64,000 nt of DNA from Macrostomum lignano (lineage: Eukaryota), in contig NIVC01002314.1 in the NCBI GenBank assembly GCA_002269645.1, forward strand, positions 120,491-184,490. Reading direction: 5' to 3'. The position numbers were made by a program, and so were the translations under genes. Positions 4,866-63,519 of the stretch are shown piece after piece. Each line of letters begins with the position of its first letter. Positions within the stretch are counted from its first letter, which is position 1. The notes beneath the pieces were generated by a model. The model had not been told where the DNA came from, did not search any database, and worked only from the letters and a program-made list of their open reading frames with translations.

Positions 4866-9155
<4,290 letters not shown>

Positions 9156-9929
9156 ATCGGTAGTTATTTAAATCTGATTTTTCGGGCGTTAAAAATCGAT
9201 ATACTATTTTTAGTGGTTAAAGCAAGATTGTTTATAAAACACAATAGCGGCTTCACTTTACTGCTGGCATTGCTGCCGTTGCTGTCTGTTGCCGCTTTTA
9301 ATGCAGCTGAAAATGCGGGAACAGATAATTTTTTTGCTGTTTTAACACGAAAATTACATACTACTTATAGTAGAACAGTAAATAATTGAAAACAAAAGAA
9401 AAATGATGAGAAAAATGGATCACACAGACTTATAAAACGATTGTATCGAGTCTTCATTTACTGTTTTGACAGAATTCAGACAACAGTTGTAGCTGACAGA
9501 TTAAACGGTTGATCAATTGTTTCTTACATGAGTAAGAAAGATCCATAGACTGTTTATACTAAACATGCAATAATAACAGAAGCTAAAAAATGATACAAAA
9601 AACTAAAAAAATAAAGCTAAAATCAAGTCGAACAGACTTACTGCTAGTAAACAATGTAATTGGTCAGAAAGAATAAACTTCTCTGCAAACCGGGCCAAAA
9701 TGTCACAATGTCACTAGCCTATTAAATCAGTTAGTTACGAGCCAATACGCAAATGGCCATTCTCCATATTCGGGTTACAGGTCGTTAACTGTGATTTTCT
9801 CTAAATAGTTAGTTAGGTAATGAATCAGGGAATTAATTGATGTGCCAGCGGCCCAGGCTCGATTCCAATATTTGCGGCTCGGCCGGCTTGGGTTTGCTTG
9901 TGAAATTAACGGCCTTGAAGGGCCAACCA

Positions 9930-26829: not shown

Positions 26830-28212
26830 TTACTCGTCAGCAGGCGGTATATCCTCTTCCTCTTCATCGGCCCCCTCTTCCATAAGCTCCTCCTCCTCCT
26901 CTTCTTCATCATCGTTCGCAGCCTCTCCCTCTTCTTCTTCTTCATCATCATCGTCTTCCTCAACCTCCTCGGCTGGCTCCAGCGCGGCCAATCTGGCCGT
27001 TCTGTCGGCCAATTCGGCCGGATTGAAATCGCGATGTCGGACAACCAGTTTAGTTTTCGTAGTCGGCGCACCGCCGGGCATGCCGATTTTTCTACGCTTA
27101 CTCAATCGAACTCGGGTCTCTAATTCGTTATAATAGACGCCGCCTTCTCTAAATACAAAGAAGTAATTCTCGTCGTAGCCTTTCATACTCTTATTCTTAA
27201 CGTTCCAATTGTACTCTCTGTTAAGTTCGTACTCGTAGACATCCTCGGCTACGTAGGGTAGGCCAGCCTCCTGATCGCGCTTCCGCTTAGCTCTGGTCTC
27301 CCTAGTTGGCAAGAAGTAAGCAACGAACTGATCGCCAGACTCGTCGACCATGCCTCGAATCATTGCCTGGGTTACATCGTCGGATAAACCGGACTGATCC
27401 TTCGGAGTCGGATCGGTGTCGAAGATCACCTGTGCGCACGGGTGCTGCCAGAGTTGAAAGTCTGGCAGCAGAGGCATCACCTGGACGGCGTGGACTCCGC
27501 GACGGCTATAATGCTCCTCTACTGGTCGCTTGGTGGCTTCGAATGTTTTCTCAATAGCTTCAATCTGTTTCTCCTTGGTCTTGTAAATATCTTCGGCCTC
27601 GCTAAATACTTTGTTCTTAAGATTGATCTTCGATTCAATCTTATCGCTAAACACCTGGTTCTGTCGATTAGCCTCATTAGAGATGTACTCAGTCTTGCGC
27701 AGCCAGGAGGCTTTCATCCTGTCGTGCCGGGACGCACGCTGGTGCAAACCGCCAGGTCCGGTCTCGTCGGCAACCAGAGCCTCATCTTCGGGATCTGGCT
27801 TAGCAACTAAAGATGTTTGATAAGTGTCCGGATTCACTAAGTCAATGTCGATGCCTAAGTCCAGCTCAGTAAGCAGTTCGTGCTTATATTCTTTCTCTAA
27901 CGAGGTCGTATTGTACTTTACAAATCGACCGGTCTCAAACGGATAGGCTAAGAATTTCGGATCAAATGGAATGTCTGGCAAGCTGTTGCAATAGCGAACC
28001 CGACAGATTAGACCACTCTCCTGCTTGCGCTGGCTGGCTTGTCCGCCAGAAGAGGCCGACGAAGGTGCAGGAGAAGCGCCTAGCGAAGACCTGCTAGAGG
28101 AGCCGCCAATGGAACTGCGATTCTGCTGCTGCTGCTGCTGATGTTGACGCCTCGATCCACCACCCGGAGTGGTTGCCGGAGACGCGGTCGCGCCAACAAT
28201 AGTCGGTCCCAT
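26830..28212 (-). CDS. PAF1: RNA polymerase II-associated factor 1 (PAF1 complex subunit), intronless, 460 aa
   Basis: MGPTI start (cf. MAPTI), ICRVRYCNSLPDIPFDPKF, TSLEKEYKHELLTELDLG, SWLRKTEYIS, HPCAQVIFDTDP, NREYNWNVKNK, YYNELETRVRLSKRR and acidic tail. The ORF-track start at 28233 is TTG; the first ATG is 28212. Confidence 0.96.
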   Translation of the reverse strand: MGPTIVGATASPATTPGGGSRRQHQQQQQQNRSSIGGSSSRSSLGASPAPSSASSGGQASQRKQESGLICRVRYCNSLPDIPFDPKFLAYPFETGRFVKYNTTSLEKEYKHELLTELDLGIDIDLVNPDTYQTSLVAKPDPEDEALVADETGPGGLHQRASRHDRMKASWLRKTEYISNEANRQNQVFSDKIESKINLKNKVFSEAEDIYKTKEKQIEAIEKTFEATKRPVEEHYSRRGVHAVQVMPLLPDFQLWQHPCAQVIFDTDPTPKDQSGLSDDVTQAMIRGMVDESGDQFVAYFLPTRETRAKRKRDQEAGLPYVAEDVYEYELNREYNWNVKNKSMKGYDENYFFVFREGGVYYNELETRVRLSKRRKIGMPGGAPTTKTKLVVRHRDFNPAELADRTARLAALEPAEEVEEDDDDEEEEEGEAANDDEEEEEEELMEEGADEEEEDIPPADE

Positions 28213-28852: not shown

Positions 28853-29404
28853 TCACAGAATCCTAGCATCGGCTACATCATTGGGCACTTTAATAACCCA
28901 ATCCTGCATGTCCGGAGTGACAACAATCTGACAGCCCAGTCTGGATGTGTCGCTCAATTCGTAGGCCATGTCCAGCATATCCTGCTCCTCTTCCGTCACC
29001 TTATTAGGCAGCGAGTCGTAATTAGCTTTGTCAAATATGAGATGACAGGTGGAACAGCTGAGAGTGCCGCCGCAGGCGCCGAATCCGTCAATATCGACAT
29101 TCTGATCGATAATTATGTCTAGCAGGTTGTCGCCAACTCGACAATCGACGCGAACTTTTGACCCGTCGCGTAGTATAAAATATATTGGAACAAAATCTGG
29201 CTGGTACTTCTGTTTGCTGCTAGAAGTAGCCGAAGCAGAATTATTACCAGACATATTTACGGTTGACAGCCATCGGTTGCGTTGACATTCACTGACGCGA
29301 CAATTCACAACTGATGCAAAACGTGGCGCACTGGAAAAGCCACTGGCAGCTGTGGCCGACACCAGTCGGCTAATGGTGCGGAGACAATTCATAAAAGTTA
29401 ACAT
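28853..29404 (-). CDS. FDX1: Mitochondrial adrenodoxin-type [2Fe-2S] ferredoxin (FDX1-like), intronless, 183 aa
   Basis: Basic/Ser-rich presequence, DIDGFGACGGTLSCSTCHLIF, EEQDMLDMAY and SRLGCQI (four Cys ligands). DGFGAC.GTL.CSTCHLIF is the FDX1-type signature rather than FDX2 (ACEASLACSTCHV). Confidence 0.88.
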   Translation of the reverse strand: MLTFMNCLRTISRLVSATAASGFSSAPRFASVVNCRVSECQRNRWLSTVNMSGNNSASATSSSKQKYQPDFVPIYFILRDGSKVRVDCRVGDNLLDIIIDQNVDIDGFGACGGTLSCSTCHLIFDKANYDSLPNKVTEEEQDMLDMAYELSDTSRLGCQIVVTPDMQDWVIKVPNDVADARIL

Positions 29405-35468: not shown

Positions 35469-37416
35469 ATGGCAACGGCGCTTGCTCAGCAGCCCAATGA
35501 GGGCAATACATACACCTTTTCGAGTCAGCCCAGAGCTGTTCCTAACCGACGAAAATACCGAGATCAGTTTGCACAGCAGTGAGTCAACCATCGAATGCTT
35601 GACTTTACTAATTAATTTTTTTTCAACTGTAAACCATAGCGAGTTCTAGTAAAATCTAAGGTTTGATGCTTCAAAAATTAATAGCTAGAATTAATCCGCT
35701 GAATGCAGACAGTTTTTGTTCTTGGGAAAGTATTGCAACTGATATACTACGCTCGTATTTACTCTGCTTTTGCAACATTTGACGCCAAAAAACTAAAGCA
35801 ACTGCATATAATCGAAAAAATAAGAAATTAATTTACGTTTTTTATGCGAATAGTCATTTTATTATCTGGTAACCGGCTAACCGCTTCCTTTATTGAGGTT
35901 ATTTTATTCGATAATCAAGACAATTTTCACTATACTCGCGCAGGAACTCGGATGAGGTGCCGCATCACGGCAACTTGATGTACGACAGGCGAGTCATTCG
36001 GGGCAACACCTACTCGCAGCATGTGCTGCCTGCAGTGGCGCAGCCCGATCCGGTGGAAATTCAACGCCAGCAGGAGATGCGAAGGCGCGCCATGGCTAGG
36101 AAGCGCGCACGCGAGCAGCTCCGACCAAAGTCGCCAGAAGCCGTCGAGGGCAGGAAGCACATTGACATCCAGACGGAGCTGTACCTAGAAGAGCTGGCGG
36201 ACCGAATCGAGGAGGCCGACGTTCAATGCCAAACTGACGACTTCCTTGACAGGCCCCCGTCGCCGCTGTTTGTCCCAGCTAAAAGCGGGGAAGACAAGGA
36301 GACTCAGATCCTTGACAACGAGGTAAAGATTTGGCGCAATATTTATTGCCTAATTTCTGACTTGCTACCAGAGTATCATCAACCATTGACCTCACTTCCC
36401 CCTCCCCCTGTTTCGATGCAGCTGTTCAACTTCGACATCGAGGTCAAGCCCATCCTGGAGGTGCTAGTTGGCAAAACCATTGAGCAGTCACTGCTGGAGG
36501 TCTGCGGCGAAGAGGAGCTGGCCAACCTGCGGGCCCAGCAGCGCGCCTTCGAGGAGCTGCGCAACGCCGAGCTCGTCGAACAACAGCGACTGGAAGAGCA
36601 GGACAGGCGCCATCGCGAGGAGAAGGCGCGCCGTGTTCAACAACAGCGCGAGGTGCAAGAGAAAGAGCGCGAGACGGCGAACAAAATCGCGGCGCGAGCT
36701 TTCGCCCAGAGCTACTTGGCCGACCTCGTGCCGTCGGTGTTCGGCACCCTGGCAGAGCACGGATATTTCTACGATCCCGTGGAGCGCGGTGAGTCACTTT
36801 TCCATCATCGTCACTTGGAATTGGTCATTTGGATTGGCAGAAGAACGTTCTTTACGTTAGATGAGGAGTTTCTACTCGTAACGGTCAGGCATGTCATGTT
36901 GTCTCGGCACATTCACGTCACGTATTTTGACTCCGTGGACCTAAGGAGATAACAAGTGGCATTTTCTCCTTGATCTGACCTCTTCTAGACGTGGAGAGCG
37001 GCTTCCTGCCCTGGCTGGTGGATGCTGTCAACACCGACATCGATTCCTCCGTGCGCGCCCGCGCCCTACTCGACGGCCTGCTGCGCGAGGTGATTCGCGA
37101 CCGGCACACCGCCTACCGCGCCCTGGAGACGCGAATCGAGCAGCAGCGCATGGCCGAGGAGGACCGGCGCGCCATGGTTGATCCATCAGCTGCCGCCGCC
37201 TCCGAGACTCAGTCGCAGCCGCGAGACGAAGACGAAAACGACGCGATGGCCAACCTGGAGGCGACCGGCGCGCCAGGCGATGCGCCTGATGCCGATGCCG
37301 ACGATTCAGCGGCCGCTAAGGAGGCTGAGGATGCCGGCGATGCCGACGCCGAGGGCGAAGCCGACGGCGAGGGCGAGGCAGACGCCGACGGAGGCGACGG
37401 CGAGGACGAGAATTAA
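35469..37416 (+). CDS. RSPH3: Radial spoke head protein 3, 4 exons: 35469-35578, 35944-36322, 36422-36788, 36989-37416; about 427 aa
   Basis: TYTFSSQPRAV, HGNLMYDRRVIRGNTY, EAVEGRKHIDIQTELYLEEL, QTDDFLDRPPSPLFVPAKSG, LFNFDIEVKPILEVLVGKTIEQSLLEV, and YFYDPVER|DVESGFLPWL across a phase-1 intron; GT-AG junctions in frame. Confidence 0.95.
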
Positions 37417-38097
37417 AAAAAGCGAGGATAAGAAACCTGATTTTTCTTGGTATTGAATATGAGACTAAAATTTATAGAACTATTAAATCCAACAAGTCCA
37501 AAAACACTCCGGCAACTGTGTAATTTAATTTCCCGAAATGGTTCGTCTCCCGCTTTTTGTCCTTGATATTTATAATCGAAGTGAATATATCGGCTAAAGT
37601 TAAAATGATTATAGCATCTCCGATCATGCTCTGCTGTTGCTTCTTTCTTTGATTTTTAACAAAGACGCGCAGTCTGAAGTGTCCCCGATTGCAGCAGGAC
37701 CTACCAGATTTCCCATTTCGACTTAACTCGTATCTTTTATATACCGTAAAGTGACCTCGTTAATTACGATGCTTAAAAAACAAAGCCGGGAAACTTCGGC
37801 TGTGCTTTTTGTACCTTCTTAAACAAGGACTTCAACTTGTGGTTGCTTACATATTATTCGTTGCTTATTTTCTATCCTTAATTGCTAACTTAACTTTTTT
37901 GGACACAAATATTTTTTGTTTCAAACTTTTGTTGCCTAACGCGCGTGCTGCCTTCGATTTGATGTCAGGATTTAATTAGTACCGGTTTCAGGCCGGGTAT
38001 TTTTGGCACTATAGTGGAATAAAACTCTGCCACATAAGACACTACTGTTGAGTAGCATGTTTTGCCTGTTTAATTTCATTCTGTGTAATTTATATTA

Positions 38098-38767
<670 letters not shown>

Positions 38768-39156
38768 TAAAAACGTTTCTTCTGACAATACATGTAGTTG
38801 CCAATAGCAATTTCTTGAAGTACAAAAATTGATATTTCAGCTAGTGGATCAATGCTATTTTATTTCATTCTCATTATATTGGTTTGTCTTTCAAGAGTAG
38901 CAGACACCTGTGCGAATTTTTCAGGCCTCTCGAAAGGCGAGCCCCCCTTTGCGGTAAAACTGAATTGCAACGGCTGCAGCTCTAAGACAGCTAGACCTGT
39001 GTGGGTGCAGGTGTGGTAGCTGAGAGAGGTGGAACTTCTGCTGATTGTTCAATAACTGGGAAGGTTGGTCGGGCAGTCTTGATCAGCTTTCAGTGCTCCA
39101 ACACACGCATGCATTTATTCTCATTTCTTCTTGCCGCAAAGAATATGCGCTTTCGG

Positions 39157-39455: not shown

Positions 39456-40224
39456 CAAGGAGTTGTAGGTGCAGAATCATCGGGAGTGGATAAAGAAGTT
39501 TGTAGACTCTCAGATATTTAATTAGTTATATTCCTTAAATGTGTTTCGACTCCAGACTCAAGACTCAACTGTCCTTGGCTCTGTAATCAGACGGGACTTT
39601 CTTAACACCCCCAACTTTTCTCTCAAACTAAAATAGAGACAAAAATTGAAAAAAAGACTCAAAAAAGACGGGGGGTCAGTGTAGAGCAGATAAAATTGCC
39701 CAAGTGAAAATTCTCCCACTGCTGCTGCTGCTGCTCAGTGTCCCCCCCCCCAGTAAACGTCTGTCAGGTTTTTGTTTACTTTGCTTTTGCTTTCTGTCCT
39801 GTCCCCTGAGTCCCTATATGCTTAATCTGGCCCCTCTCGTTTTGAGAGGGGTGGGTATGATTCCCGCTAATTCGGTTTGCTTTTCTCCTCAATTTGGACA
39901 TAGAATTAGGGGTGCTGGGTCAGTGCGATCACACAGTTCCCTCTGTTGCAGATTCTTATGGTTCCTTCTGGTCTGTCTAGGTAGGCATTTCTGAGAATCT
40001 TTTCGAAAGAGGATCCTTTTTAAACGGCTTTGTGTGTGTTTGTGTGTGCGTTTCTTGGAAAAGTCTTTGTGGACCGGTGAGATGACAGGCCTTCTGGATT
40101 CCACTTGAATATAAACTGCTTTCTTCACAAAGACCAGTGATCTTAGTTGTAAATGTTTTTAATTTTGCTTCTCGCTCGTCTCTGCCGTTGCTTGCAATGA
40201 CGTTTGACTAAGTGGGGTTATTAG

Positions 40225-41580
40225 TGAGTTCTTGAGTGAGTTCATGAATAATAAGTTCATGGGTGAGTTCATAGTAAAGTTTATGAGTGAGTTCATCAGT
40301 GAGTTCATGAGTGAGTGAGTTCATGAGTGATTCCATATTTGAGTTCATGAGTGATTCCATAGTTGAGTTCATGAGTGATTCCATATTTGAGTTCATGAGT
40401 GATTCCATAGTTGAGTTCATGAGTGATTCCATATTTGAGTTCATGAGTGATTCCATAGTTGAGTTCATGAGTGATTCCATATTTGAGTTCATGAGTGATT
40501 CCATAGTTGAGTTCATGAGTGATTCCATATTGAGTTCATGAGTGAGTGAGTTCATGAGTGATTCCATAGTTGAGTTCATGAGTGATTCCATAGTTGAGTT
40601 CATGAGTGATTCCATAGTTGAGTTCATGAGTGATTCCATAGTTGAGTTCATGAGTGATTCCATAGTTGAGTTCATGAGTGATTCCATAGTTGAGTTCATG
40701 AGTGATTCCATAGTTGAGTTCATGAGTGATTCCATAGTTGAGTTCATGAGTGATTCCATATTTGAGTTCATGAGTGATTCCATAGTTGAGTTCATGAGTG
40801 ATTCCATAGTTGAGTTCGTGAGTGATTCCATAGTTGAGTTCATGAGTGATTCCATAGTTGAGTTCGTGAGTGAGCTCATTGGTGAGTTCATGAGTGATTC
40901 TATATTTGAGTTCATGAGTGATTCCATAGTTGAGTTCAATGAGTGATTCCATATTTGAGTTCATGAGTGATTCCATATTTGAGTTCATGAGTGATTCCAT
41001 AGTTGAGTTCAATGAGTGATTCCATAGTTGAGTTCATGAGTGATTCCATATTTGAGTTCATGAGTGATTCCATAGTTGAGTTCATGAGTGATTCCATATT
41101 TGAGTTCATGAGTGATTCCATAGTTGAGTTCATGAGTGATTCCATAGTTGAGTTCATGAGTGATTCCATATTTGAGTTCATGAGTGATTCCATAGTTGAG
41201 TTCATGAGTGATTCCATAGTTGAGTTCATGAGTGAGTGAGTTCATGAGTGATTCCATAGTTGAGTTCATGAGTGATTCCATAGTTGAGTTCATGAGTGAT
41301 TCCATAGTTGAGTTCGTGAGTGAGTGAGTTCATGAGTGATTCCATATTTGAGTTCATGAGTGATTCCATAGTTGAGTTCATGAGTGATTCCATAGTTGAG
41401 TTCGTGAGTGAGCTCATTGGTGAGTTCATGAGTGATTCCATATTTGAGTTCATGAGTGATTCCATAGTTGAGTTCAATGAGTGAGTTCATTGGTGAGTTA
41501 AAGACTCATTGGTGAGTTAAAGACTCATTGGTGAGTTAAAGAATGTATGAGCCAGCTCATGAGTTCACGAGTGATTCATA
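40225..41580. repeat. 24-nt minisatellite (GAGTTCATGAGTGATTCCATAGTT), about 50 copies with degenerate ends
   Basis: Direct tandem repeats. Confidence 0.96.
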
Positions 41581-47340: not shown

Positions 47341-48105
47341 AGGTGCGCCAAACACAGGAGCGCAAGTTTCAGGTGGCGCCAAACACAGGAGCGCAAGTTT
47401 CAGGTGGCGCCAAACACAGGAGCGCAAGTTTCAGGTGGCGCCAAACACAGGAGCGCAAGTTTCAAGTGGCGCCAAACACAGGAGCGCAAGTTTCAGGTGG
47501 CGCCAAACACAGAAGCGCAAGTTACAGGGGGGTGTGGCGCCAAACACAGAAGCGCAAGTTACAGGGGGGTGTGGCGCCAAACACACTAGCGCAAGTTACA
47601 GGGGGGTGTGGCGCCAAACACAGAAGCGCAAGTTACAGGGGGTGTGGCGCCAAACACAGAAGCGCAAGTTACAGGGGGGTGTGGCGCCAAACACAGAAGC
47701 GCAAGTTACAGGGAGGAGGTGGCGCCAAACACAGGAGCGCAAGTTACAGGTGGCGCCAAACACAGGAGCGCAAGTTACAGCACAGGGAGGAGGTGGCGCC
47801 AAACACAGGAGCGCAAGTTACAGGTGGCGCCAAACACAGGAGCGCAAGTTACAGGTGGCGCTAAACAGAGGAGCGCAAGTTTTAGGTGACGCCAAACACA
47901 GGAGCGCAAGTTACAGGTGGCGCCAAACAGAGGAGCAAAAGTTTCAGGTGGCGCCAAACACAGAAGCGCAAGTTACAGGTGGCGCCAAACACAGGAGCGC
48001 AAGTTACAGGGAGGAGGTGGCGCCAAACACAGAAGCGCAAGTTACAGGGAGGAGGTGGCGCCAAACACAGGAGCGCAAGTTATAGGCGGGGATCTGGCGC
48101 CAAAT
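47341..48105. repeat. 31-nt minisatellite (GGTGGCGCCAAACACAGGAGCGCAAGTTTCA) with longer G-rich variants, about 23 copies
   Basis: Direct tandem repeats, with variants clustered in blocks. Confidence 0.93.
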
Positions 48106-49435
48106 AACAGATCTATAATACATGTATTCTTCGGTCCATTCGGTCACTTCATAACTGCATTCAATGCGTAAGCCACTTCAATGGCTTCCTCTATTCCAAC
48201 TCCGGCCCGGCCCGTCCCGCGGCAGAGTGTAAAATGAGAAGGGGTGCCCCCGCAGTTTGATACACGAGAGCTGCTGCAACTCTTACTGCAGTCACTCCAC
48301 TCCTCAAACTGAACTGAGCAACTTGAGCTTGCATTACATTCCTTTATTCCTCCATTCCCCCCCCCAGCGAGTTGAACACCAGAGTGAAAGTAGAGAGAAA
48401 ATGACTGTCCGGTGGATTGCAAGCGAGAGAATCGCGGCAATATTTGAGAGCTGCACCACGTGTGTCGCAGATGGCGTCTCTTGTAGGGACTTTCACCCAC
48501 CACCCAGCCGCCCGCCACAGTAAAATGCATGCTGCGCGGCCTCTTCAATATAACAGTCGCACCTCGCTGCAATGTGCATGCTCACTTAAAAAGCTGCCTG
48601 CACACCCCGTCCCTCAATCAAACGGTGAATAAAATGGTTGTTTCGGATTGGGAAGAATGTCAGCGAATGCAAAAAAAAGTTTCCCAAAAAAATTCATTTT
48701 TTTCTCGCAGACCAAAACTCAACATATACTGCGTTGAGCACCTTCTCACTCCCCCCCCTTGAGTCTATATTTTCCGCGCTGCACTCAACTGACTCGCGGT
48801 CACCAAGCAGGGGTTCCAGCAGTTGATCATGGGGCAAGGCAGGTATAGCCAGAGGTGGTGTCGGGTGCTGCACTGGGGGCCTCTTAAATTACCAAATAGC
48901 CGCACACGGGCGCGTTTTCCTCTCGAAGTTTTTCTTAAATATATTCCATTGGCCGGCTCAACTTCACGAACCCGCAAGGGCGGTCGCGAGCAACATCTGT
49001 TGTTGAATGTCTTCGCTTTCCATTGCTCTGCTCTGCTCTCTCTCTCTATCCCATGCCATGCCTGTTTGCCTCACCAGTGACTGCCTATAGAGTTGACTGA
49101 AGTATGGCTCTAAGTATACGGCTAGCAAAGTATAATCTATAAAGGAATTGAATTAAAACTAATTTATAAAAAAGCACACGGCAGCGCATAGCTAATACTG
49201 CAGACAGATGTGCATTATAATAAGAACTAAGGGTCATGGCTATTGATCTTAGATTCTTAGAATTCATTCGGTTGCAAGGTCAAAGAATATAACTATAGAA
49301 GTTTGCCTACATAGATGTTTATTCTGTTGTTTTTTGCACAAGTTTCTCAAATTAATGCTGTATTCATTTTGAGTTGATTTTTAACAGTCGAACAAACACG
49401 ACTTCACGTTTATATGACTCTCTGCTTCAGTCAGC

Positions 49436-50250
49436 AATACCTGTCTACCAGTCCATACCTACCTGTCTACCAGTCCATACCTACCTGTCTACCAGTCCAT
49501 ACCTACCTGTCTACCAGTCCATACCTACCTGTCTACCAGTCCATACCTACCTGTCTACTAGTCCATACCTACCTGTCTACCAGTCCATACCTACCTGTCT
49601 ACCAGTCCATACCTACCTGTCTACCAGTCCATACCTACCTGTCTACCAGTCCATACCTACCTGTCTACCAGTCCATACCTACCTGTCTACCAGTCCATAC
49701 CTACCTGTCTACCAGTCCATACCTACCTGTCTACCAGTCCATACCTACCTGTCTACCAGTCCATACTTACCTGTCTACCAGTCCATACCTACCTGTCTAC
49801 CAGTCCATACTTACCTGTCTACCAGTCCATACCTATACCTGGTCTACCAGTCCATACCTACCTGTCTACCAGTCCATACCTACCTGTCTACCAGTCCATA
49901 CCTACCTGTCTACCAGTCCATACCTACCTGTCTACCAGTCCATACCTACCTGTCTACCAGTCCATACCTACCTGTCTACCAGTCCATACCTACCTGTCTA
50001 CCAGTCCATACTTACCTGTCTACCAGTCCATACCTACCTGTCTACCAGTCCATACTTACCTGTCTACCAGTCCATACCTATACCTGGTCTACCAGTCCAT
50101 ACCTACCTGGTCTACCAGTCCATATCTTCCGGGTCTACCAGTCTACACCTACCGGGTCTACCTACCAGTCTACCTACCAGTCTACACCTACCGGGTCTAC
50201 CTACCAGTCTACCTAACAGTCTACACCTACCGGGTCTACCAATTTATCTA
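49436..50250. repeat. 22-nt minisatellite (ACCTGTCTACCAGTCCATACCT), about 31 copies decaying at the right end
   Basis: Direct tandem repeats. Confidence 0.95.
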
Positions 50251-50899
50251 CCTAAACAGTCCACAACTACCACCCTATCATTCCATTTACCATAGTAACA
50301 GATTTTGTTCAGAAAAAAATTAGAGTCTATATTACCAAGCGTAATGCAAACAGAGTAATCTATAAGCACAAAAAATACGTACGAGTATAACAGACACAGG
50401 ACTATAGCACAGATTATTTAGGCTAAACTGTCAAAGTCACTCTACATAATAAGATTAAGACTGGTGCCCAGCACCGAATATTGTTGTATAACGTATGTAT
50501 ATCATAAATTCTTCACTGACAACACAACCGACAACCTGAGCTCATTGTACGCTCGTATATTCATTCAGGACAAGCTTCATAGTATGGGGGGAACCATACC
50601 TTTCTGAACCAAAAGTATGTACATAATTAGCTCTTCACCCACCCCCCCCCCGAGGGACTTTGTCTCACTGTCAAGTGCATAGCACTCTGGCAATAAGGGG
50701 ATTATTTTCCCAAACAATACTCTGGCTTAGCTAGACTGGGCCGGATTAACAAATCCACGAGGCTCACTCACTGCTCCCCCCCGCTCACGAGGAAGCAAAT
50801 TCCCAAAATGTGGACAAGCACCTCACCTCACCTCATCCCAAATATGATCCCAAATCCCAATGAAAATTATGCTTCTCCAGTCTCCCGATCCCTCGGAGA

Positions 50900-51177: not shown

Positions 51178-53452
51178 ATGCAGAAATCCCACAGCAAGCG
51201 GCTCGCCCCGCCAGAGGCCTGTCTGGCCGGCGTGGTGGCCGCCGAGGCCATCCCGGAGGGCCAGCGGACCGGACGGCTGGCCGAGGCGCCGCAGTTTGCC
51301 CGGACACTGCGCGACGAGCGACAGGTCGCGAACTTTGTAGCGGTAAGTCTTTTAGTTGGCGTTTTGGGTAACAGACGAGAGTAACTTGACTAAATATCCC
51401 TGCGCTTAGATGGGGGGGGGGCGAACTCCGGCCCGCGAATCCTCTCTATCCGGCCGTCGGGTCCTTTGAAACTTCACAATAGCAATCTGGCCCGCTCAAG
51501 GTTCGTCTCTTCTCTCCCCTCTTCTCTCCTCTTCTCTCGCCTCATCTCACCCCTCTTCTCTCCCCTCTTCCCTCCCCTCTTCTCTCCCCTCTTCTCTCCC
51601 CTCTTCCCTCCCTCTTCTCTCCCTCTCTCCCCCTCTCTCGCCTCATCTCACCCCTCTTCTCTCCCCTCTTCCCTCCCCTCTTCTCTCCCCTCTTCTCTCC
51701 CCTCTTCTCTCCCCTCTTCTCTCCCCTCTTCTCTCCCTCTCTCCCCTCTTCTCTCCCCTCTTCTCTCCCCTCTTCTCTCCCCTCTTCTCTCCCCTCTTCC
51801 CTCCCCTCTTCTCTCCCCTCTTCTCTCCCCTCTTCTCCCCTCTTCCTCCCCTCTTCTCTCCCCTCTTCTTCTCTCCCCTCTTCTCTCCCCTCTTCTCCCC
51901 TCTTCTCTCGCCTCATCTCACTTCTCTTCTCTCCCCTCTTCTCTCCCCTCTTCTCTCCCCTCTTCTCCCCTCTTCTCTCGCCTCATCTCACTTCTCTTCT
52001 CTCCCCTCTTCTCTCCCCTCTTCTCTCCCCTCTTTTCTCCCTCTTCTCTCACCTCATCTCTCCCCTCTCTCTCCTCCTCTTCTCTACCCTCTTCTCTCTC
52101 TCCTCTCTCCTCTTTTCTCTTCATCCCATCTCTCGGCCCTCTCTTCTCTTCTCTCTCATTTTCAATTCCCTTCCCTTATCTGCAGGCATGAGCTGAATTC
52201 TTTATCTATAGCCCTTCAGGTAAAAAGGTTTGTCCGGGTAAACGGCGTGAGTAACTATTACTACTTTATGATATTTAAATGCTCCGTCATCTAAGTAGCT
52301 AAATGCGAATGCTTCCACCAGGTCCGCCCGGTGTTCCGTAAGCAGTCGACGGATGTCGGAGGCATCGTGGACGAGCAGGGCGGCTTGGCCTGGGTCACCC
52401 GGCTGCAGGGGGCGCGCGACCGGGCCGAGCAGAATCTCGAGCTGCTGCTACAGGAGGATCCGACTGAGGAGACGCCGGAGGGAACTCGGAGGGGATTTTG
52501 GTTGAGAGCGACTCGCGAGATTCGACCCGGAGAGCAGCTGCTGGTCTGGTTTTCCGACGCTTGCGCCATGCAGCTGGGAGTTCCCGTGCTGTCTGTGCTC
52601 AACATCAGAGGTGAGCGAGATGGGATCGGAGATGGGATCGGAGATGGGATCGGAGATGGGATCGGAGATGGGATCGGAGATGGGATCGGAGATGGGATCG
52701 GAGATGGGATCGGAGATGGGATCGGAGATGGGATCGGAGATGGGATCGGAGATGGGATCGGAGATGGGATCGGAGATGGGATCGGAGATGGGATCGGAGA
52801 TGGGATCGGAGATGGGATCGGAGATGGGATCGGAGATGGGATCGGAGATGGGATCGGAGATGGGATCGGAGATGGGATCGGAGATGGGATCGGAGATGGG
52901 ATCGGAGATGGGATCGGAGATGGGATCGGAGATGGGATCGGAGATGGGATCGGAGATGGGATCGGAGATGGGATCGGAGATGGGATCGGAGATGGGATCG
53001 GAGATGGGATCGGAGATGGGATCGGAGATGGGATCGGAGATGGGATCGGAGATGGGATCGGAGATGGGATCCTATTTCGGAGATCAAATCTCAACATGAT
53101 CAAATTGTTCCCTTCACCAACCCGCAGCGCATCACTGCTACCAGTGCCACCTGTGCCAGAGGAAGTTTCTCCACCCGAACGTGCTCAAGGCGCACCTGAT
53201 GCACGCATGCACCAGCGACTCGCTGCACCAACATCAGCAGCACCGCCTGGCCCCTCCACCGCTCCATCTGCCGTCGCCGCACCCGCTGCAGCTTCAACAG
53301 TTGCAGATGCAGCTCCAGCTGCAGCTGCAGCTTCAGCGCGGCATTCTCGAGTTCGCCGCCAACCATCGGGTCGCTCCTCCGCCGGACCTGCTCGCCCTGC
53401 TCCGCCGGTTCGGCCAGCAGCCTCCGTCATCTGCACCGACGCTGCCACCGCC

Positions 53453-53483
<31 letters not shown>

Positions 53484-54158
53484 CAGCTGATGTCGAAGCC
53501 GCGCCATCGCCGACCCTGGGAGGAGGATGATGACGTCATTGTCGATCACAACGACGACGAGATGCAACAGCAGCAACAGCATCAGCATCATCGTAATCAT
53601 CGGCACACGACCTCCTTCGACTGCAGCGTCGCGGGTAGCACAGCATCAACGTCCACACCTTCGTCGACGCCGAAAAAGTTGGAGCCCCCGACTGTTGATC
53701 GCCAGCAGCAGCAGCAGCAGCGTCAGGAGAAGGACGAGGAGATGGCCGAGTCGCCGCTGATGCTCCGTGACGTCAGTCCGACTCTGTCCGCTGTCGCTGC
53801 GCCGTCAGCCATGGAGCTGCCCAGCGACGCGGAGCCTCTGGACCTGATCCCGCGCTCGCTGTACACCTGCAAGTCCAACAAGGGCCACCTGTGCATCTAC
53901 TGCGGCAAAGTGTACTCGCGCAAGTACGGTTTGAAAATTCACCTGCGAACTCATACCGGCTACAAGCCGTTGAAATGCCGCGTCTGTCTGCGGCCGTTCG
54001 GCGATCCCAGCAACCTGAACAAGCACATCCGCTTGCACGCCGAGGGCGACACGCCGTATAGGTGCGAATTCTGCGCCAAGGTGCTGGTCCGCCGGCGCGA
54101 CCTGGAGAGGCATCAACGCTCGAGGCATCCGGACCGACTGATTATGATGGGGAAATAA
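51178..54158 (+). CDS. PRDM13: PR-domain zinc finger protein 13, 3 exons: 51178-51342, 52322-52610, 53128-54158; about 494 aa
   Basis: PR/SET domain ([39 protein letters not shown]), first finger [24 protein letters not shown], and C-terminal fingers [72 protein letters not shown], characteristic of PRDM13; GT-AG junctions in frame. Confidence 0.93.
51503..52165. repeat. Polypyrimidine tract built on a 12-nt unit (CTCCCCTCTTCT), PRDM13 intron 1
   Basis: About 660 nt that are almost exclusively C/T on the sense strand. Confidence 0.93.
52617..53071. repeat. Perfect 12-nt minisatellite (GAGATGGGATCG), about 38 copies, PRDM13 intron 2
   Basis: No variant units seen within the array. Confidence 0.97.
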
Positions 54159-54536
54159 GCTCCAGAAACCTTGATTTCTACTTATATGAGTAGCATAGTT
54201 AGTAAAACTTTATTTAACTTCCTTGAGAAGCTTATCAATAACTTTTTTAAATTATAACAATCCCTTTCATTATTGAAATTGCAACAAGACTCTAATAAAA
54301 AAATTTAACCAAGCATCCGTGCGTACATGTCTCTTGCGTGTTTTTGCTTTCAGTTCTGCTTGCTTTTCGTCACGTTTAAAATTATTGATCTCTTAAATAT
54401 ATGAAATTTAAATTAATAATAAATTAGCAAATGCACGATCATATTATTTCAATGCTATGCTATGCATGTCAATGCTTCTTACCGATCAACATCCAGCGGC
54501 TTGTACTTTAATTTTCTGGCTTGAAGAAAATATCCA

Positions 54537-55769
54537 TTCTGTAGCAGTAGGTAGGGATTCTGTAACAGTAGGTAGGGATTCTGTAACAGTAGGTAGGGAT
54601 TCTGTAACAGTAGGTAGGGATTCTGTAACAGTAGGTAGGGATTCTGTAACAGTAGGTAGAGATTCTGTAACAGTAGGTAGAGATTTGTGTAACAGTAGTT
54701 AGGCATTCTGTAACAGTAGGTAGGGATTCTGTAACAGTAGGTAGGGATTCTGTAACAGTAGTTAGGCATTCTGTAACAGTAGGTAGGGATTCTGTAACAG
54801 TAGTTAGGGATTCTGTAACAGTAGGTAGGGATTCTGTAACAGTAGTTAGGGATTCTGTAACAGTAGGTAGGGATTCTGTAACAGTAGGTAGAGATTCTGT
54901 AACAGTAGGTAGGGATTCTGTAACAGTAGGTAGAGATTTGTGTAACAGTAGGTAGAGATTCTGTAATAGAAGGTAGGATTCTGTAAGAGTAGGTAGGGAT
55001 TCTGTAACAGTAGGTAGGGATTCTGTTATAGAAGGTAGGATTCTGTAACAGTAGGTAGGGATTCTGTAACAGTAGGTAGGGATTCTGTAACAGTAGGTAG
55101 AGATTCTGTAACAGTAGGTAGGGATTCTGTAACAGTAGGTAGAGATTTGTGTAACAGTAGGTAGGGATTCTGTAATAGAAGGTAGGATTCTGTAAGAGTA
55201 GGTAGGGATTCTGTAACAGTAGGTAGGGATTCTGTAACAGTAGGTAGAGATTTGTGTAACAGTAGGTAGGGATTCTGTAACAGTAGGTAGGGATTCTGTA
55301 ACAGTAGGTAGGGATTCTGTAACAGTAGTTAGGCATTCTGTAACAGTTAGGTATGGATTCTGTAACAGTAGTTAGGGATTCTGTAACAGTAGGTAGGGAT
55401 TCTGTAACAGTAGGTAGGGATTCTGTAACAGTAGTTAGGGATTCTGTAACAGTAGGTAGGGATTCTGTAACAGTAGGTAGGGATTCTGTAACAGTAGTTA
55501 GGGATTCTGTAACAGTAGGTAGGGATTCTGTAACAGTAGGTAGAGATTCTGTAACAGTAGGTAGGGATTCTGTAACAGTAGGTAGAGATTCTGTAACAGT
55601 AGGTAGGGATTCTGTAACAGTAGGTAGAGATTTGTGTAACAGTAGGTAGGGATTCTGTAATAGAAGGTAGGATTCTGTAAGAGTAGGTAGGGATTCTGTA
55701 ACAGTAGGTAGGGATTCTGTAACAGTAGGTAGGGATTCTGTAACAGTAGGTAGGGATTCTGTAACAGTA
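54537..55769. repeat. 21-nt minisatellite (GGGATTCTGTAACAGTAGGTA), about 58 copies
   Basis: Direct tandem repeats. Confidence 0.96.
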
Positions 55770-56259
55770 AGTGCAGGGCATTGTTGAAAGACTTCAACAA
55801 TGTGAAATTTCAAGCTTTTAAGTATCGAGCCAGTGAAAATGGCCTGCTGAATGATTTGGCAGTCTTGTCTTGTGTCTAATTTGTCTATGGCTGAAACCCA
55901 CCGAAGGTAATACCGCTGTTCATGGGCGAATTGATTGCCAACGAAAGCTTTCTCGCGAACTATTGTTATACAGCAATAATTTAACTTATATAAATTATAA
56001 CAATAATTTATTGTTATAATTGAAGGATGGCACGTCAACATGACAAGCCGAAGTACTCCACCATGTGGGGCATGGAGTACACTCACAACGGTAATTTAGT
56101 CACACTGCGCAGTCATACGCCTAGCGTAAGATTTCGCGTTATTGGCGAGTCTCAAACGGAGACCAGGGATGCATTTGAGACTTTTGCGGTGCCCAACAAG
56201 CAACGATCTCTGCCTGTGGTGAGTCTGGGGTTGCGGCGAATGCAATGTTAGAGGGGCCT

Positions 56260-56580
56260 GCAAGAGCCGCCAGCAAGAAGCGCCAGCCGAAACTGGCGCC
56301 ACCATAAGAGAGGCGCCACAAGCAATGAGGTGGCGCACACAGTAGTGAGGGGTGCCACCCAGCAATGAGAGGCGCCACCAGCAATCAGAGGCGCCACCAG
56401 CAATGAGAGGCGCCACCAGCAATGAGAGGCGCCAACAGCAATGAGAGGCGCCAGCAGCAATAAGAGGCGCCACCCAGCAATGGGGGCGCCGCAGACAATG
56501 AAGGGCGCCAGCAGCAATGAAGGGCGCCAACCAACAATGAGGGGTGCCACCCAGCAGTGAGGGGCGCCATAAGCAATGAG
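56260..56580. repeat. 19-nt minisatellite (GAGGCGCCACCAGCAATGA), about 16 degenerate copies
   Basis: Direct tandem repeats. Confidence 0.88.
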
Positions 56581-56712
56581 GAGCGTCACAGGAACGAAGA
56601 TGAAGGCAGTAAAAATAAAAGAGCTGCATTGACGTATGCTATTCAGCAGAAACATTATATTTATGATGCCTGATATACAAGCTACTAATGATAACAATTT
56701 ATGCATTTTTAG

Positions 56713-58925: not shown

Positions 58926-60375
58926 ATGAACATCGCGCTCTCTCACCATTCCTGCCGTTGGTCATCCATTCACCCTTGGTGTGCTGTACAACAGCAGGAC
59001 CAGCCAAATCATCCCCGGAGTCAAGTTATTCACCACTGAGCAGATGCAGGCTATGCTGACCGAAACTAAGAAAATTAGCATGGAGACCGATATCGTCACA
59101 GAAACGTCAGCGAACAGCAAAAACCTGAGCACAAAAGTGACTGGAAATCTGTCGCTGTCAATTTTATCGGGACTAGTTTCGGCTAAAGGCTCCGGGAACT
59201 ATCAGACTGCATTAAAAGAGAAGAAAGAGACGGAGAGTGCCATATATCGATTGCAAGTTCAAGGAAAGTATTGGGAACTTGTTCTCCCACCAGATTGGAA
59301 GCTGAAGAGCTCAGCGAGCTACAAAGATGCGACTCACGTAGTAATGGGAATTCAGTACGGCGGAGCCGCACTGTTCTTCTTTGAGCGGGACAGAGAAGAC
59401 TCCGCAACGAGCGATAAAACCGGAGGCCGTCTGCAAGCTGATATTGGCAAGTTTGCATCGGTGGTCAGCATCTCTGGAGCTGCCTCGCTTGACATGACGT
59501 CGGAGGAAACAAAAGTCCTGCAGAAGATCCGGGTTGCCTACAAAGGAGACTTCCACCTGGCCAGCCCACCGACCGACTTCATTGAAGCCATGAAGTGCAT
59601 TCAAACAATCCAAGCGGCTGAAGCTAGATCGCCACTGACGGTCACTCTGCTTCCTCTGTCACTGCTGGTTGAAGACGCTCCACCAGCTCCCCTGCCACTA
59701 CCGCGCACGTGCATCTCTAAAACTGTTCGCTGCTACGATGTGCTGAAAGAAGCTCTGACTACTCTGGAGGAAATTACTTACAAGCTGAGACCGACAGCGT
59801 GGACTCACGTGGTGAAGAAGCTGGAAGCGGAACTTCGGGAGCTCGAATCATTCAAGTCTTCCCTTGATGATGTTGTGAGGGAAGCTGTTCTAGATCACAC
59901 GGCTGAGCCTGCTAATCGTGCGAAAAAAATTGAGTTAAAAACTGGCCTTTTTGACGCTGGAAAAAAGTACGCTTACCTACAGGAATGGGCCACCGCAGTC
60001 GCCGATGCCGGTGACGTTCTGGTTGTGATTTCCAATAAGTTCCGGCAGTCTGGCGCCCAGATAATTAAAAGCCAGGCCCAGAGAGCCGAATTCATCATGA
60101 GAAGCATGACAGAACAAAAGCAAAAGATGTACTGCCTGTCTTGCCCAATGAAATTGTTTGAACTGCAAAACTTCAAGCTCCAAGCTGGACTGAAACTCTG
60201 GAGCGATGAAGAACTGGAGAAGAAGTTTTACAAAGCGTTGGTAAAATACTGCCCCAGGCCAGGAAATCAAAAACAGAAATTTGAGCAATCTCTAGCGGCT
60301 GTTGAGCAATCCGAGGTTTCTGATTCTGATGCATCCGGAGTGCAGGTGATCTTCCAGAACCTCTCATTAAATTAA
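58926..60375 (+). CDS. Stonustoxin/verrucotoxin-like pore-forming protein 1 (about 480 aa); ATG out of frame by +1 with the conserved N-terminus (pseudogene or indel)
   Basis: PAVGHPFTLGVLYNSRTSQIIPG (cf. AALGRPFTLGMLYDAR..LIPG), LSGLVSAKGSGNY, ATHVVMGIQYGGAALFFF, YKGDFHLASPPTDFIEA and PLTVTLLPL; then a helical region and a short THX-like region, with no PRY-SPRY. ATG at 58926 reads ATG-A-ACA. Confidence 0.8.
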
Positions 60376-60689
60376 AATTAAATTGGTGACACCTCCGTTC
60401 GTGAGTAACGACAATATTTGATTGTGAAAACGTGAACTACCGAGTTTGCAAACTAAAGCGCAAACTTTTAGACAAGACCGGAAAGTAGACTATATTTGCC
60501 TTACACATTTTCTCACCTTTCTATACCAAGTGGAGATAGCTTATGGATCTGTTTATATGTGCCTTACTCCTTCGCGATAAATGATTAATTTGTTTTATTT
60601 CCCTCTCATTAATTGATTCTTTTTTGTTTTCACTAAATATTCAGATCCGCTTTGCTTTACATTTTCTACTCACGTGTACTTATTCAGTA

Positions 60690-60990
60690 GGAGAGTGGAG
60701 TCTAGGTCTGTAGCCTATCGGTTAGGCGGTTAGCAACCCACTAAGAACAATTTGTATCCTTGAGCAAGACACCTAACTCTGCATTGCTTCAGTTCTCCCA
60801 GCTGTAAAATGGGTGCTGCATTAGCTGAGGTAATTGAGGGTGTGTGTGGCGACCCCAGCCCTTGAACTGAACAGCCGTACGCAGCCTTCAGATGCGCCGC
60901 GCAATAGCTGCGGCTGAGCTGTCGGTTGCACATCTAGGTAGGTGGTATCAATTAAAATAATAATAATTATTATTATTATTACTATTATTG
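60690..60990 (+). mobile_element. CORE-type SINE copy with eroded tRNA head and (TAA/TTA)n tail, between the two SNTX-like genes
   Basis: TCCTTGAGCAAGACACCTAACTCTGCATTGCTTCAG..CCCAGCTGTAAAATGGGTGC..GAACTGAACAGCCGTACGCAGCCTTCAGATGCGCCGCGCAAT matches the reverse complement of 23555-23845. Confidence 0.8.
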
Positions 60991-61492
60991 CTATTATCAT
61001 TAATATTATTATTATTACTAATAGTCGTAAAATACACTCTAATTAAATGTTAATTGGAATCAGATTGGTAAAAGTACTATAAATACGATTTCTCATTGTA
61101 CTCGTAATATATACTCTCAGTTCTAGTAACAAAATCTTTACATAGTACGAGTACTATTAAAATATTTATGAATATGAAACAGGCATATTTTGTTCGCTGT
61201 CACTAAACCTTAAGTATGTAATCCAGCTTCTTTTTTTTCAATAAAAGTTAATAAAAAAATACGGATTGTTAAACAAAAAATGTTTTTCTTCTTCTTTTTT
61301 GGATTAGTGCACTAGGAATCATATCAGCGGCAGTCGATAGCTTGTATCTTCTTCTTAGTATAATTTTAGTACTCTCGAGATAAAACATTGACCCTTATTG
61401 GAGAAGTTGCTAGTAGGCTTATTAAATGGCGGAACTCGCTCTAACAACCATCGGCCAAACATTTCAGCACAATCCTGACGAACGACTTCAAC

Positions 61493-63519
61493 ATGCAAAC
61501 TCAACCGGAGTGCATCCTGTCTCTGGGCCGGCCGTTTCAGCTCGGACAGCTGTACGACATCCGACAGCACCGGATCATTGCACAGTCGGCCTGGCCATCT
61601 GATCGAATTCGGAAAATGACGACTCGGCTGGATGATGCGCCCAGCGTGAGGTTTTCTCTGGACTACGAGTACAGCTCGAAACGCCGAGCGGAGCAGCTGG
61701 GGCTGAACGCCCAGCTGAGATTTTGCATTGAGTTCAAAGCGTTGTGGTGGACAGTGTACGAGAAGACAATGACAGGATCAGCAAAATACGTCACGAGGCA
61801 AGCTCCACCGAGACCAGTGGAAGCGTCACTTTGCAGTACGACGTGAAGAGTGCGTTTGAGGAGCTTCAGTACTGCAACGAGCCTGTAGACAATGAGAAGA
61901 AGTTACTAAGCATTGGTGCAACGCACGTTGTGACAGGAATCAGGTACGGAGGCAAGGCGTTCATTGTCTGCAAAGGCTGGTCCAATGCGTCCAGCTTCTT
62001 CGAGCGAGCAACATCTGACTGTCATGAACTGGTAGATTGGAAGGTGGAACAGTGGATCAGAGATGCTGGGCAGTCTGCCAGATCGTTCGCTCAGTTTGGC
62101 TTGCCGAACCGCTCTTCAAGTTCTGGCAGTTATCAGATCGAGTGTCACACAGACTTCAAGCAGCCAAGGAAGACAATGAGAGAGCCACCGGATGTTTTAG
62201 AGTATTTTAAATCCTTGGATTCGAGGGATGCGAATCAAGCAATGGAAATCCATCTCACTCCATTGTGCTACTTTTGCCCGTCGGTTCCAGCTTCAGTCCC
62301 AATGACAAAAACGCAACATCTGGAAGATGCCTGCCAGTACCTTCAAGCGTTGAAGGCTGGCTTTGAACATTCCGAGCAACTTTTGGACAAGATTAGCCGG
62401 GAGGCAGAGTTGAACATTTCAATCGGAGAGACACTGAACGGATACAATAGAGACCTGGACACTCATGTAAACGAGTACACACAGCGGATGCAACAAAGTT
62501 TTGTGAATCATCGCACTTCGGACGAGTTTGCTGAAGCTCATCACGCCGGCAGTTTAGACAGCGTCTTCACCTACACCAGCATGGACACCTCTTTGAACAT
62601 GTTTGGTCGCCAAACTACCGACCTCTGCGATTTAAGTGCAAAGCTTCGACAGGGTATTGACGCTACAAGCGCTGAAGAACTTGAGATGAAAGCAGAAAGA
62701 TTGGCAAAGGAAATAGAGGACCTTTTTAGCATACACAACTCAAGCAAGCAGCTTGAAGAGCAAATGTCCCCAGGACAGAGCAACTTTAGAATTAAGCGCA
62801 CCAGAATCGAAGAAAGAAGTCGGGATGATCGGTCCTGCATCACTTGGTGCATCAGGTGTCGAAGTACGTGCCATGAAGACTGTGGCTATTCCAATAACGA
62901 GGATAAAGCAAAGTGCTGTGCCATGAACAGTGATGGATACTGTAAAGAGTGCGGCTGCTACTGGAGACTTCACCGAAACACCAGCACCGAACAGAGGGAG
63001 TTTGAATACTACGAATCTGTTCCCATTGACAAAGTGAGCAAGAAGTATGGAGAAAATACAAACCAGCGCGGTGCTGCGAGGCGTCTCAAGTATCACCTAG
63101 GAATGGACGCGAAGATGGCTTTGCAGAAAACGGCCTACAAACTCGTGAGTGCTCACAGGTGCTTGAAAGGCCTGCACCAGGACGTCAACTTGGATCAGTT
63201 CATTAGAGACAAGCTTCGGTCCAAGCGGCTGGATCCGGAAGATTCCTCCAAGTTGATTGAACTGACCAAAGCTATCGATGCACGAGTTGAGGATAGAACC
63301 GATTACGCTAGGTTTGAATGGCAGTCACGACTGCCGGAACGTCCGACAACGCCGCCGACATTTGGTGCAGTCGGTGCAGACAGTACAGGCAGTGGTACGG
63401 CTCGTATTGGTGCAGCAGTCTTTGGTGCCGGTTCATCCGATTTGTATCGTTCTTTGTACGGTGGGCGACAAAATCGGGATTCAAATCCCCAGTCTGATCC
63501 GGATTGCACTATTAGTTGA
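61493..63519 (+). CDS. Stonustoxin-like pore-forming protein 2 with a C-terminal Cys-rich module and CaaX box (about 675 aa), interrupted by a 1-nt frameshift near 61791
   Basis: Frame 1: LSLGRPFQLGQLYDIR..GSAKYV; frame 2: HEASSTETSGSVTLQYDVKSAFEEL, ATHVVTGIRYGGKAF, ECHTDF and MEIHLTPL. Restoring one base gives GSAKYVHEASSTETSGSVTLQY, matching the spacing of SNTX GSAKYL..VTLQY. Ends DCTIS-stop. Confidence 0.8.

Follow-up and report, generated by a model that had tools for sequence, protein, structure and literature searches.

Two adjacent coding regions at positions 58926 to 63519 of a 64,000-nucleotide stretch from the flatworm Macrostomum lignano (the window; contig NIVC01002314.1) belong, judging from sequence comparison, to the stonustoxin (SNTX)-like branch of the MACPF/CDC (perforin-like) superfamily. 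Both lie on the + strand and both are intronless; we refer to them as gene 1 and gene 2. Our preferred reading, which we hold with belief and doubt in about equal measure, is that they are two unannotated single-exon SNTX-like genes, old and distant paralogues of each other, that now stand as recently disabled or silent birth-and-death copies. The first-pass annotation of this DNA had described a tandem pair of divergent pore-forming genes in a soft-bodied invertebrate and had proposed that they form a two-component effector used in cell-autonomous defence or prey capture. The host is indeed a flatworm, and both coding regions are present as described; neither, however, is an intact open reading frame (ORF), one frame break being found in each gene, a point the annotation had understated.

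SNTX-type domains in both genes

The gene 1 piece and the two pieces of gene 2 were analysed separately, unjoined. The gene 1 piece matches chain B of the SNTX structure 4WVM over residues 4-258 against 5-264 (E=1.8e-32; the other 4WVM chain gives 7.5e-32). The two pieces of gene 2 match 4WVM independently and colinearly, the N-terminal piece over residues 8-77 against 8-77 of chain B (E=8.7e-4) and the main piece over residues 24-263 against 101-336 (E=3.6e-4). Aligned by hhalign to a profile of 94 family members, residues 2-263 of gene 1 reach a probability of 100% (E=2.8e-39) and residues 22-182 of the gene 2 main piece one of 94% (E=8.5e-8). On these alignments, the homology of both genes to the SNTX pore-forming domain is far beyond chance.

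All five motifs of the SNTX N-terminal signature set claimed earlier are found in each gene. They read GHPFTLGVLY, GSGNY, ATHVVMGIQYGG, GDF and LLPL in gene 1 and GRPFQLGQLY, GSAKY, ATHVVTGIRYGG, TDF and LTPL in gene 2, and the core signature ATHVVxGxxYGG is intact in both. In the family alignment 68 columns are at least 80% conserved; 41 of these are retained in gene 1 and 34 in gene 2. The two transmembrane hairpin (TMH) regions have the expected size: TMH1 and TMH2 of gene 1 are 52 and 53 residues long, and all such regions in the two genes fall at 52-53 residues, the family median being 52. By a crude measure of two-residue alternation, the TMH regions of gene 1 lie at the 9th-12th percentile of the family; by the same crude measure, TMH1 of gene 2 reaches the 93rd percentile and its TMH2 is the lowest of the 94 relatives, below the shuffle mean.

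When 163 relatives were compared with the window by tblastn, homology was confined to the two genes, gene 1 being covered in one frame and gene 2 in two. The relatives align colinearly to both genes without intron-sized gaps, and the stop of gene 1 is separated from the ATG of gene 2 by 1,117 bp, so the co-oriented intronless pair about 1.1 kb apart was correctly described. The same search gave no match to the PRY-SPRY part of any relative. A signal peptide is likewise absent from both genes, their N-termini aligning from residue 2-8 of SNTX; here too we agree with the first-pass annotation. Profile and relative comparisons detected no thioredoxin-like domain in either gene. A scan of the three gene pieces against NCBIfam gave 0 matches.

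Architecture of the two genes and their long relatives

The long ORF of gene 1 runs from 58930 to 60375 on the + strand and comprises 481 codons. Its likely start lies just outside it: at 58926-58929, an ATG (58926-58928) that is one base out of register with the ORF shares two bases with a TGA (58927-58929), and this TGA closes the main ORF's frame on the upstream side. Since the alignments with SNTX and the other relatives begin at residue 2 of those proteins and at the opening codons of the ORF, we take the ATG at 58926 to be the ancestral start, which puts the break no more than a few bases away from it. Flatworms use spliced leaders, and a start donated by such a leader was considered for gene 1 and rejected, there being no AG in the right register.

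Residues 1-263 of the 481-residue piece (58930-59718) form the MACPF/CDC domain of SNTX type, as aligned to 4WVM_B and by hhalign. The C-terminal region of about 218 residues (264-481; 59719-60375, with the stop at 60373-60375) is less readily placed. Its first ~130 residues, to about residue 392, give a weak colinear alignment with the FAT region of fish relatives; for the last ~90 residues, profile and sequence comparisons of this region alone detected no relative. The tail is helical in the sole AlphaFold model, which was made without an alignment and whose mean pLDDT of 33.8 is too weak to rely on. Gene 1 is a MACPF domain followed by a short, possibly helical tail. We note that residues 390-434 (MRSMTEQKQKMYCLSCPMKLFELQNFKLQAGLKLWSDEELEKKFY; window 60097-60231) weakly resemble the N-terminus of the family, with an hhalign probability of 12%; the segment could be a remnant of the start of another copy read in frame, or the likeness could be due to chance.

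Gene 2 is longer and is split between two frames. Its N-terminal piece (61493-61846, + strand) begins with the ATG at 61493, contains the first strand motif, TMH1 and GSAKY, and ends after 117 codons at the stop 61844-61846. The main frame is open over 591 codons, beginning at 61744 and ending with the stop at 63517-63519. Homology to the family is carried by the first frame as far as about 61795-61830 and by the second from about 61765-61792. The break can be placed in the interval 61790-61824: 35 nt separate the Y of GSAKY from the V of VTLQY, the relatives have 12 codons there, and a single plus-or-minus-one break accounts for the switch. The second part of the MACPF/CDC domain (61765-62289) is in the main frame and contains ATHVVTGIRYGG, a divergent TMH2, TDF and LTPL.

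The remainder of gene 2 is best understood from a group of long relatives, in which a MACPF domain is followed by a helical region, one or more FN3 domains, a P-loop GTPase (with the motifs GxTGxGKSTLIN and DTPGFGDT), a coiled coil, a Cys-rich module and a helical tail. This long form is known from M. lignano itself (PAA60539.1 and PAA80612.1), from the fish Gouania (XP_028328301.1) and from the shrimp Palaemon (XP_068232724.1), and all of these proteins are uncharacterised. In gene 2, the MACPF domain is followed by a helical/coiled-coil linker (62290-62781) from which FN3 and GTPase are absent. From about residue 283 of the main piece, the linker corresponds by homology to the coiled coil found ahead of the Cys-rich module in the long relatives. 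Then come the Cys-rich beta module (62782-63030), with the pattern TxCxxCxxTCHxxC ... C ... CxxCxC ... H-N and all invariants kept, and, within 63031-63504, a helical tail homologous to that of the long relatives and then a low-complexity stretch that is probably disordered. The C-terminal CTIS and the stop follow (63505-63519, stop at 63517-63519); CTIS is a candidate CaaX box for farnesylation.

The Cys-rich module and tail match the long relatives with phmmer E values as low as 9e-16, and a profile of the Cys-rich tail family reaches E values down to 6e-91 for relatives that carry the GTPase. No such module is present in gene 1. An AlphaFold model of the gene 2 tail built with 15 relatives has a beta core with pLDDT 82-93 between long helices. 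Foldseek found nothing similar to this model in the PDB (best E=0.86), and a profile of the module run against PDB sequences gave coiled-coil noise and an insignificant match to a C1 domain. The module is probably zinc-binding. Among the matches listed, the module with its tail (window 62782-63330) carries no Pfam annotation of its own.

PAA60539.1 aligns to the main piece of gene 2 in two blocks only, over its residues 102-314 (MACPF) and 959-1073, and some 600 middle residues comprising FN3 and GTPase are missing relative to the long form. The tblastn search with 163 relatives found no FN3 or GTPase segment anywhere in the 64-kb window. Because of the two-block alignment and the retained Cys-rich invariants, gene 2 looks like a deletion derivative, a member of the long-form group that has lost its middle part, GTPase included, and has retained the Cys-rich module and CTIS.

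With gene 1 as query, an exhaustive HMMER search against 1.84 billion representatives returned 867 matches at E<=1e-3, whereas a word-indexed search for its homologues gave none. The best representatives are 26-37% identical to gene 1, and as none exceeds 37%, no annotated protein corresponds to it. The top matches are a fish model with three MACPF domains, PAA60539.1 (1,163 residues), PAA80612.1 (1,211 residues), a tuatara model with two MACPF domains and a rotifer protein; many fish proteins named 'stonustoxin/neoverrucotoxin subunit-like' follow. The fish model, from Prochilodus (2,668 residues), contains three SNTX-type MACPF domains and the tuatara model (1,476 residues) two; both are probably tandem genes fused by annotation. 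An SNTX-like family is thus already annotated in M. lignano, and genes 1 and 2 are new, shortened and possibly dead members of it.

Pairing, frame breaks and the alternatives

The two genes lie next to each other in the same orientation, and SNTX itself pairs two MACPF subunits, encoded by linked genes, in a heterodimer. These two points favour the proposal of the first-pass annotation, that genes 1 and 2 are the subunits of a heteromeric pore former of the SNTX alpha/beta kind, used in defence or prey capture. Beyond this adjacency, however, the proposal has no support, and we consider it very unlikely. The MACPF domains of the two genes are 22-25% identical, and when relatives are ranked together with the other gene, gene 1 comes 109th of 115 in the gene 2 MACPF search and gene 2 comes last, 162 of 162, in the gene 1 MACPF search; each is among the most distant family matches of the other. 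SNTX alpha and beta, by comparison, are sister paralogues about 50% identical and are defined within scorpaenoid fish only (PMC10566576). Given the low identity and the position of each gene at the bottom of the other's match list, they are not sister paralogues of the alpha/beta type; the mutual ranks also led us to reject a recent tandem duplication. Both genes have the long M. lignano proteins among their best matches.

The annotation was therefore right that the genes are divergent and that their C-termini differ (the tail of gene 1 against the Cys-rich module of gene 2), and the same divergence argues against partnership. Adjacency says little on this point, because tandem order is the default of the family: fish sntx genes are generally in tandem or clustered (PMC10566576), and the fused models probably reflect the same arrangement. 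Both genes, moreover, lack a secretion signal and PRY-SPRY, the membrane-binding domain of SNTX; each has a broken frame, and in gene 2 the TMH2 region is degenerate and shows no alternation. As there is no secretion signal, prey capture is unlikely. Cell-autonomous defence is a reasonable, though putative, role.

The two frame breaks, one at the start codon of gene 1 and one within 61790-61824 of gene 2, may be real lesions or artefacts, and the two readings lie close together. We rejected an intron as an explanation of either switch of frame, since gene 2 has a gap of 35 nt and gene 1 one of 0-1 nt. Nor could the frame switch in a PRDM-like gene elsewhere in the window serve as a yardstick for assembly error, since it is an ordinary intron boundary. 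Outside the two breaks, the coding frames contain 0 stops; the other five frames contain 13-32 each in the two long pieces and 1-5 in the N-terminal piece of gene 2. Neither break lies within a long homopolymer. Protein searches and exact look-ups, which are an indirect test, gave no protein record corresponding to either gene. The look-ups returned no record for gene 1 (from its first in-frame ATG) or for the N-terminal piece of gene 2; they also returned none for a ferredoxin ORF in the window or for a 222-residue ORF upstream. A profile search that included the C-terminal 312 residues of gene 2 itself did not return gene 2.

We regard recent disablement or silence as slightly more likely than assembly error. 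Disablement is favoured because neither gene has an annotated product, because the breaks lie outside long homopolymers and because TMH2 of gene 2 is degenerate. It is favoured also because pseudogenes with frameshifts or premature stops are common in fish sntx repertoires (PMC10566576) and polyploidy offers one shared cause of relaxed selection on the two genes. The M. lignano genome is neopolyploid (PMC5730564), and the species is described as a recent polyploid (PMC10733133); selection on both genes would perhaps have been relaxed after this recent genome doubling. Several observations weigh against disablement. The genes are at a contig end with low depth, in an assembly that Canu built from PacBio data and that was then polished with Pilon (PMC5730564), and one indel error per gene would suffice to produce what we see. 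A single lesion in each gene, with 0 stops over more than 1,150 codons, is closer to what intact genes would show than to what long-dead ones would, and all Cys-rich invariants and most MACPF core motifs are retained.

Assembly error is thus a close alternative, kept so by the contig-end position, the PacBio origin of the data and the otherwise perfect frames. If both breaks were errors, the locus would encode two intact, independently acting cytosolic perforin-like proteins that are silent in the laboratory and perhaps induced by infection, and the product of gene 2 would carry a farnesyl group at CTIS and be drawn to the cytosolic face of membranes. We view this account as a serious though tentative one. 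The retained core motifs and Cys/His invariants suit it, as does CTIS, which is a proven CaaX box and has counterparts at the ends of relatives (CVIM, CSIL, CIIL and CNIL). It sits less well with the other single-exon genes of the window (Paf1 and ferredoxin), which are intact, with the position of the breaks away from long homopolymers, with the degenerate look of TMH2 in gene 2 and with the lack of a protein model for either gene in a transcriptome-guided annotation, an indirect test.

The state of TMH2 also raises another possibility, that gene 2, and perhaps gene 1, is non-lytic, with MACPF serving, as in other repurposed perforin-like proteins, as a scaffold for oligomerisation or membrane binding and the Cys-rich module and lipid anchor carrying the function. 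Non-pore roles of MACPF proteins are reportedly documented in a review. An alternation score below the shuffle mean and lowest of 94 relatives would fit such a protein, as would the full conservation of the Cys-rich module and tail. The measure of amphipathicity is crude, however, TMH1 of the same gene stands at the 93rd percentile, and a non-lytic role leaves the frame break unexplained; we consider it quite unlikely.

Setting, proposed function and known systems

The contig is 184,490 bp long and ends where the window ends (64000; window position x is contig position x + 120,490), both genes lie in its last 5 kb, and the stop of gene 2 is 481 bp before the end. An SNTX-like array could continue past this point, and consensus quality may be lower there. 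The intergenic spacer (60376-61492) is AT-rich with an ATT microsatellite at 60966-61017; it has no homology to the family and no repeats in common with the flanks, and on this comparison a segmental repeat or transposon context for the pair was rejected. An Rfam scan of the entire 64-kb window gave 0 matches.

The flanking genes are of housekeeping type, and no further immune-type or toxin-type gene was seen within the window. They comprise an SHPRH-like SNF2 helicase (10057-24502, - strand), Paf1 (26830-28212, - strand), which is 100% identical to a protein of this contig in assembly GCA_002269645.1 (Mlig_3_7) and has an M. lignano paralogue 92% identical, a 2Fe-2S ferredoxin (28853-29404, - strand) and radial spoke protein 3 (35957-37416, + strand). 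The PRDM-like gene (52331-54158) consists of the end of a SET-like domain, an intron with a tandem repeat coding for GIGDGI and a C2H2 zinc-finger exon that begins after a CAG acceptor near 53130. Minisatellite arrays at 7000-9200, 17900-18900, 38076-38788, 40208-41012, 47343-48085, 49374-50295, 51466-53100 and 54479-56629 yield long spurious ORFs on both strands in several frames (for example, a 19-bp unit at 56295-56589) and are typical of the repeat-rich M. lignano genome.

To our knowledge, no function has been assigned to non-venom SNTX-like proteins. Intact forms of genes 1 and 2 would act from the cytosol, because they have no signal peptide. Their MACPF domains would oligomerise on a membrane, and the two helical bundles, TMH1 and TMH2, would refold into beta-hairpins that form the pore; MACPF oligomerisation and hairpin insertion have been described for SNTX (PMC8704401). 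We suggest that the C-terminal modules would supply targeting in place of PRY-SPRY, with gene 2 relying on its Cys-rich module and a farnesyl anchor. Canonical CaaX ends occur in 4 of the 182 relatives fetched: CVIM in a long-form protein, CSIL in a gecko 'stonustoxin beta-like' protein, CIIL and CNIL. The family-wide enrichment of Cys at position -4 was rejected as evidence of prenylation, most cases being the PRY-SPRY ends of fish proteins.

The coiled coil, Cys-rich module and helices that make up the tail also follow GTPases of the AIG1, septin or MMR_HSR1 type in shrimp and fish proteins of 450-550 residues. The recurrent fusion of an AIG1-type GTPase with the Cys-rich module, together with the occasional CaaX end, suggests a cytosolic, membrane-directed role. 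M. lignano is a laboratory model with RNA interference and transgenesis, so such a role is open to testing there. The family was already known in fish, reptiles, annelids, nemerteans and M. lignano, and gaining two more members, unannotated and possibly dead, is useful for annotation and unsurprising; the more interesting lead lies outside the window, in the MACPF-GTPase-Cys-rich architecture with its occasional prenyl box. The locus might even give a view of an uncharacterised system of cytosolic perforin-like effectors shared across phyla, which we think unlikely. If it were, the long form would couple an SNTX-type pore domain, an AIG1/GIMAP-like GTPase, a zinc-binding tail and sometimes a prenyl anchor, and gene 2 would be a natural minimal version, with pore domain, tail and GBP1-type CTIS box and without GTPase. 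Such a protein would act against membranes from their cytosolic face, those of pathogen vacuoles for instance, or against the cell's own membranes to bring about cell death, in parallel to the logic of GBP and gasdermin but with different parts.

Among known systems, SNTX and neoverrucotoxin (4WVM) resemble the flatworm genes in having MACPF/CDC from about residue 2, no signal peptide, the core motifs and the same TMH lengths, and in coming from a family with tandem gene linkage and frequent frameshift pseudogenes. They differ in their host, in that genes 1 and 2 are not sisters and in that both frames are broken here. The SNTX toxins also carry FAT, thioredoxin-like and PRY-SPRY domains after MACPF (PMC8704401), whereas the flatworm genes show a weak FAT-like region in gene 1 alone. 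SNTX-like sequences from nemerteans and Glycera annelids (PMC4986456) come from soft-bodied hosts too; these are known as transcripts annotated by similarity, and we liken them by description. The CTIS of gene 2 is identical to the C-terminus of human GBP-1, where it is a proven farnesylated CaaX box that by itself directs GFP to membranes (PMC2998424). Outside these four residues the two proteins share no homology, and the likeness points by analogy to a possible mode of targeting only. The long form supplies the best invertebrate matches of both genes and shares its MACPF domain, Cys-rich module and helical tail with gene 2; it differs in the ~600 middle residues that gene 2 lacks, in everything past the helical region that gene 1 lacks and in an identity of 25-30%. 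The AIG1/GIMAP-like GTPases (in Macrobrachium, and in Cirrhinus as 'AIG1-type G domain-containing protein') share the coiled coil, Cys-rich module and helical tail with gene 2, but they have the GTPase without MACPF, whereas gene 2 has MACPF without the GTPase.

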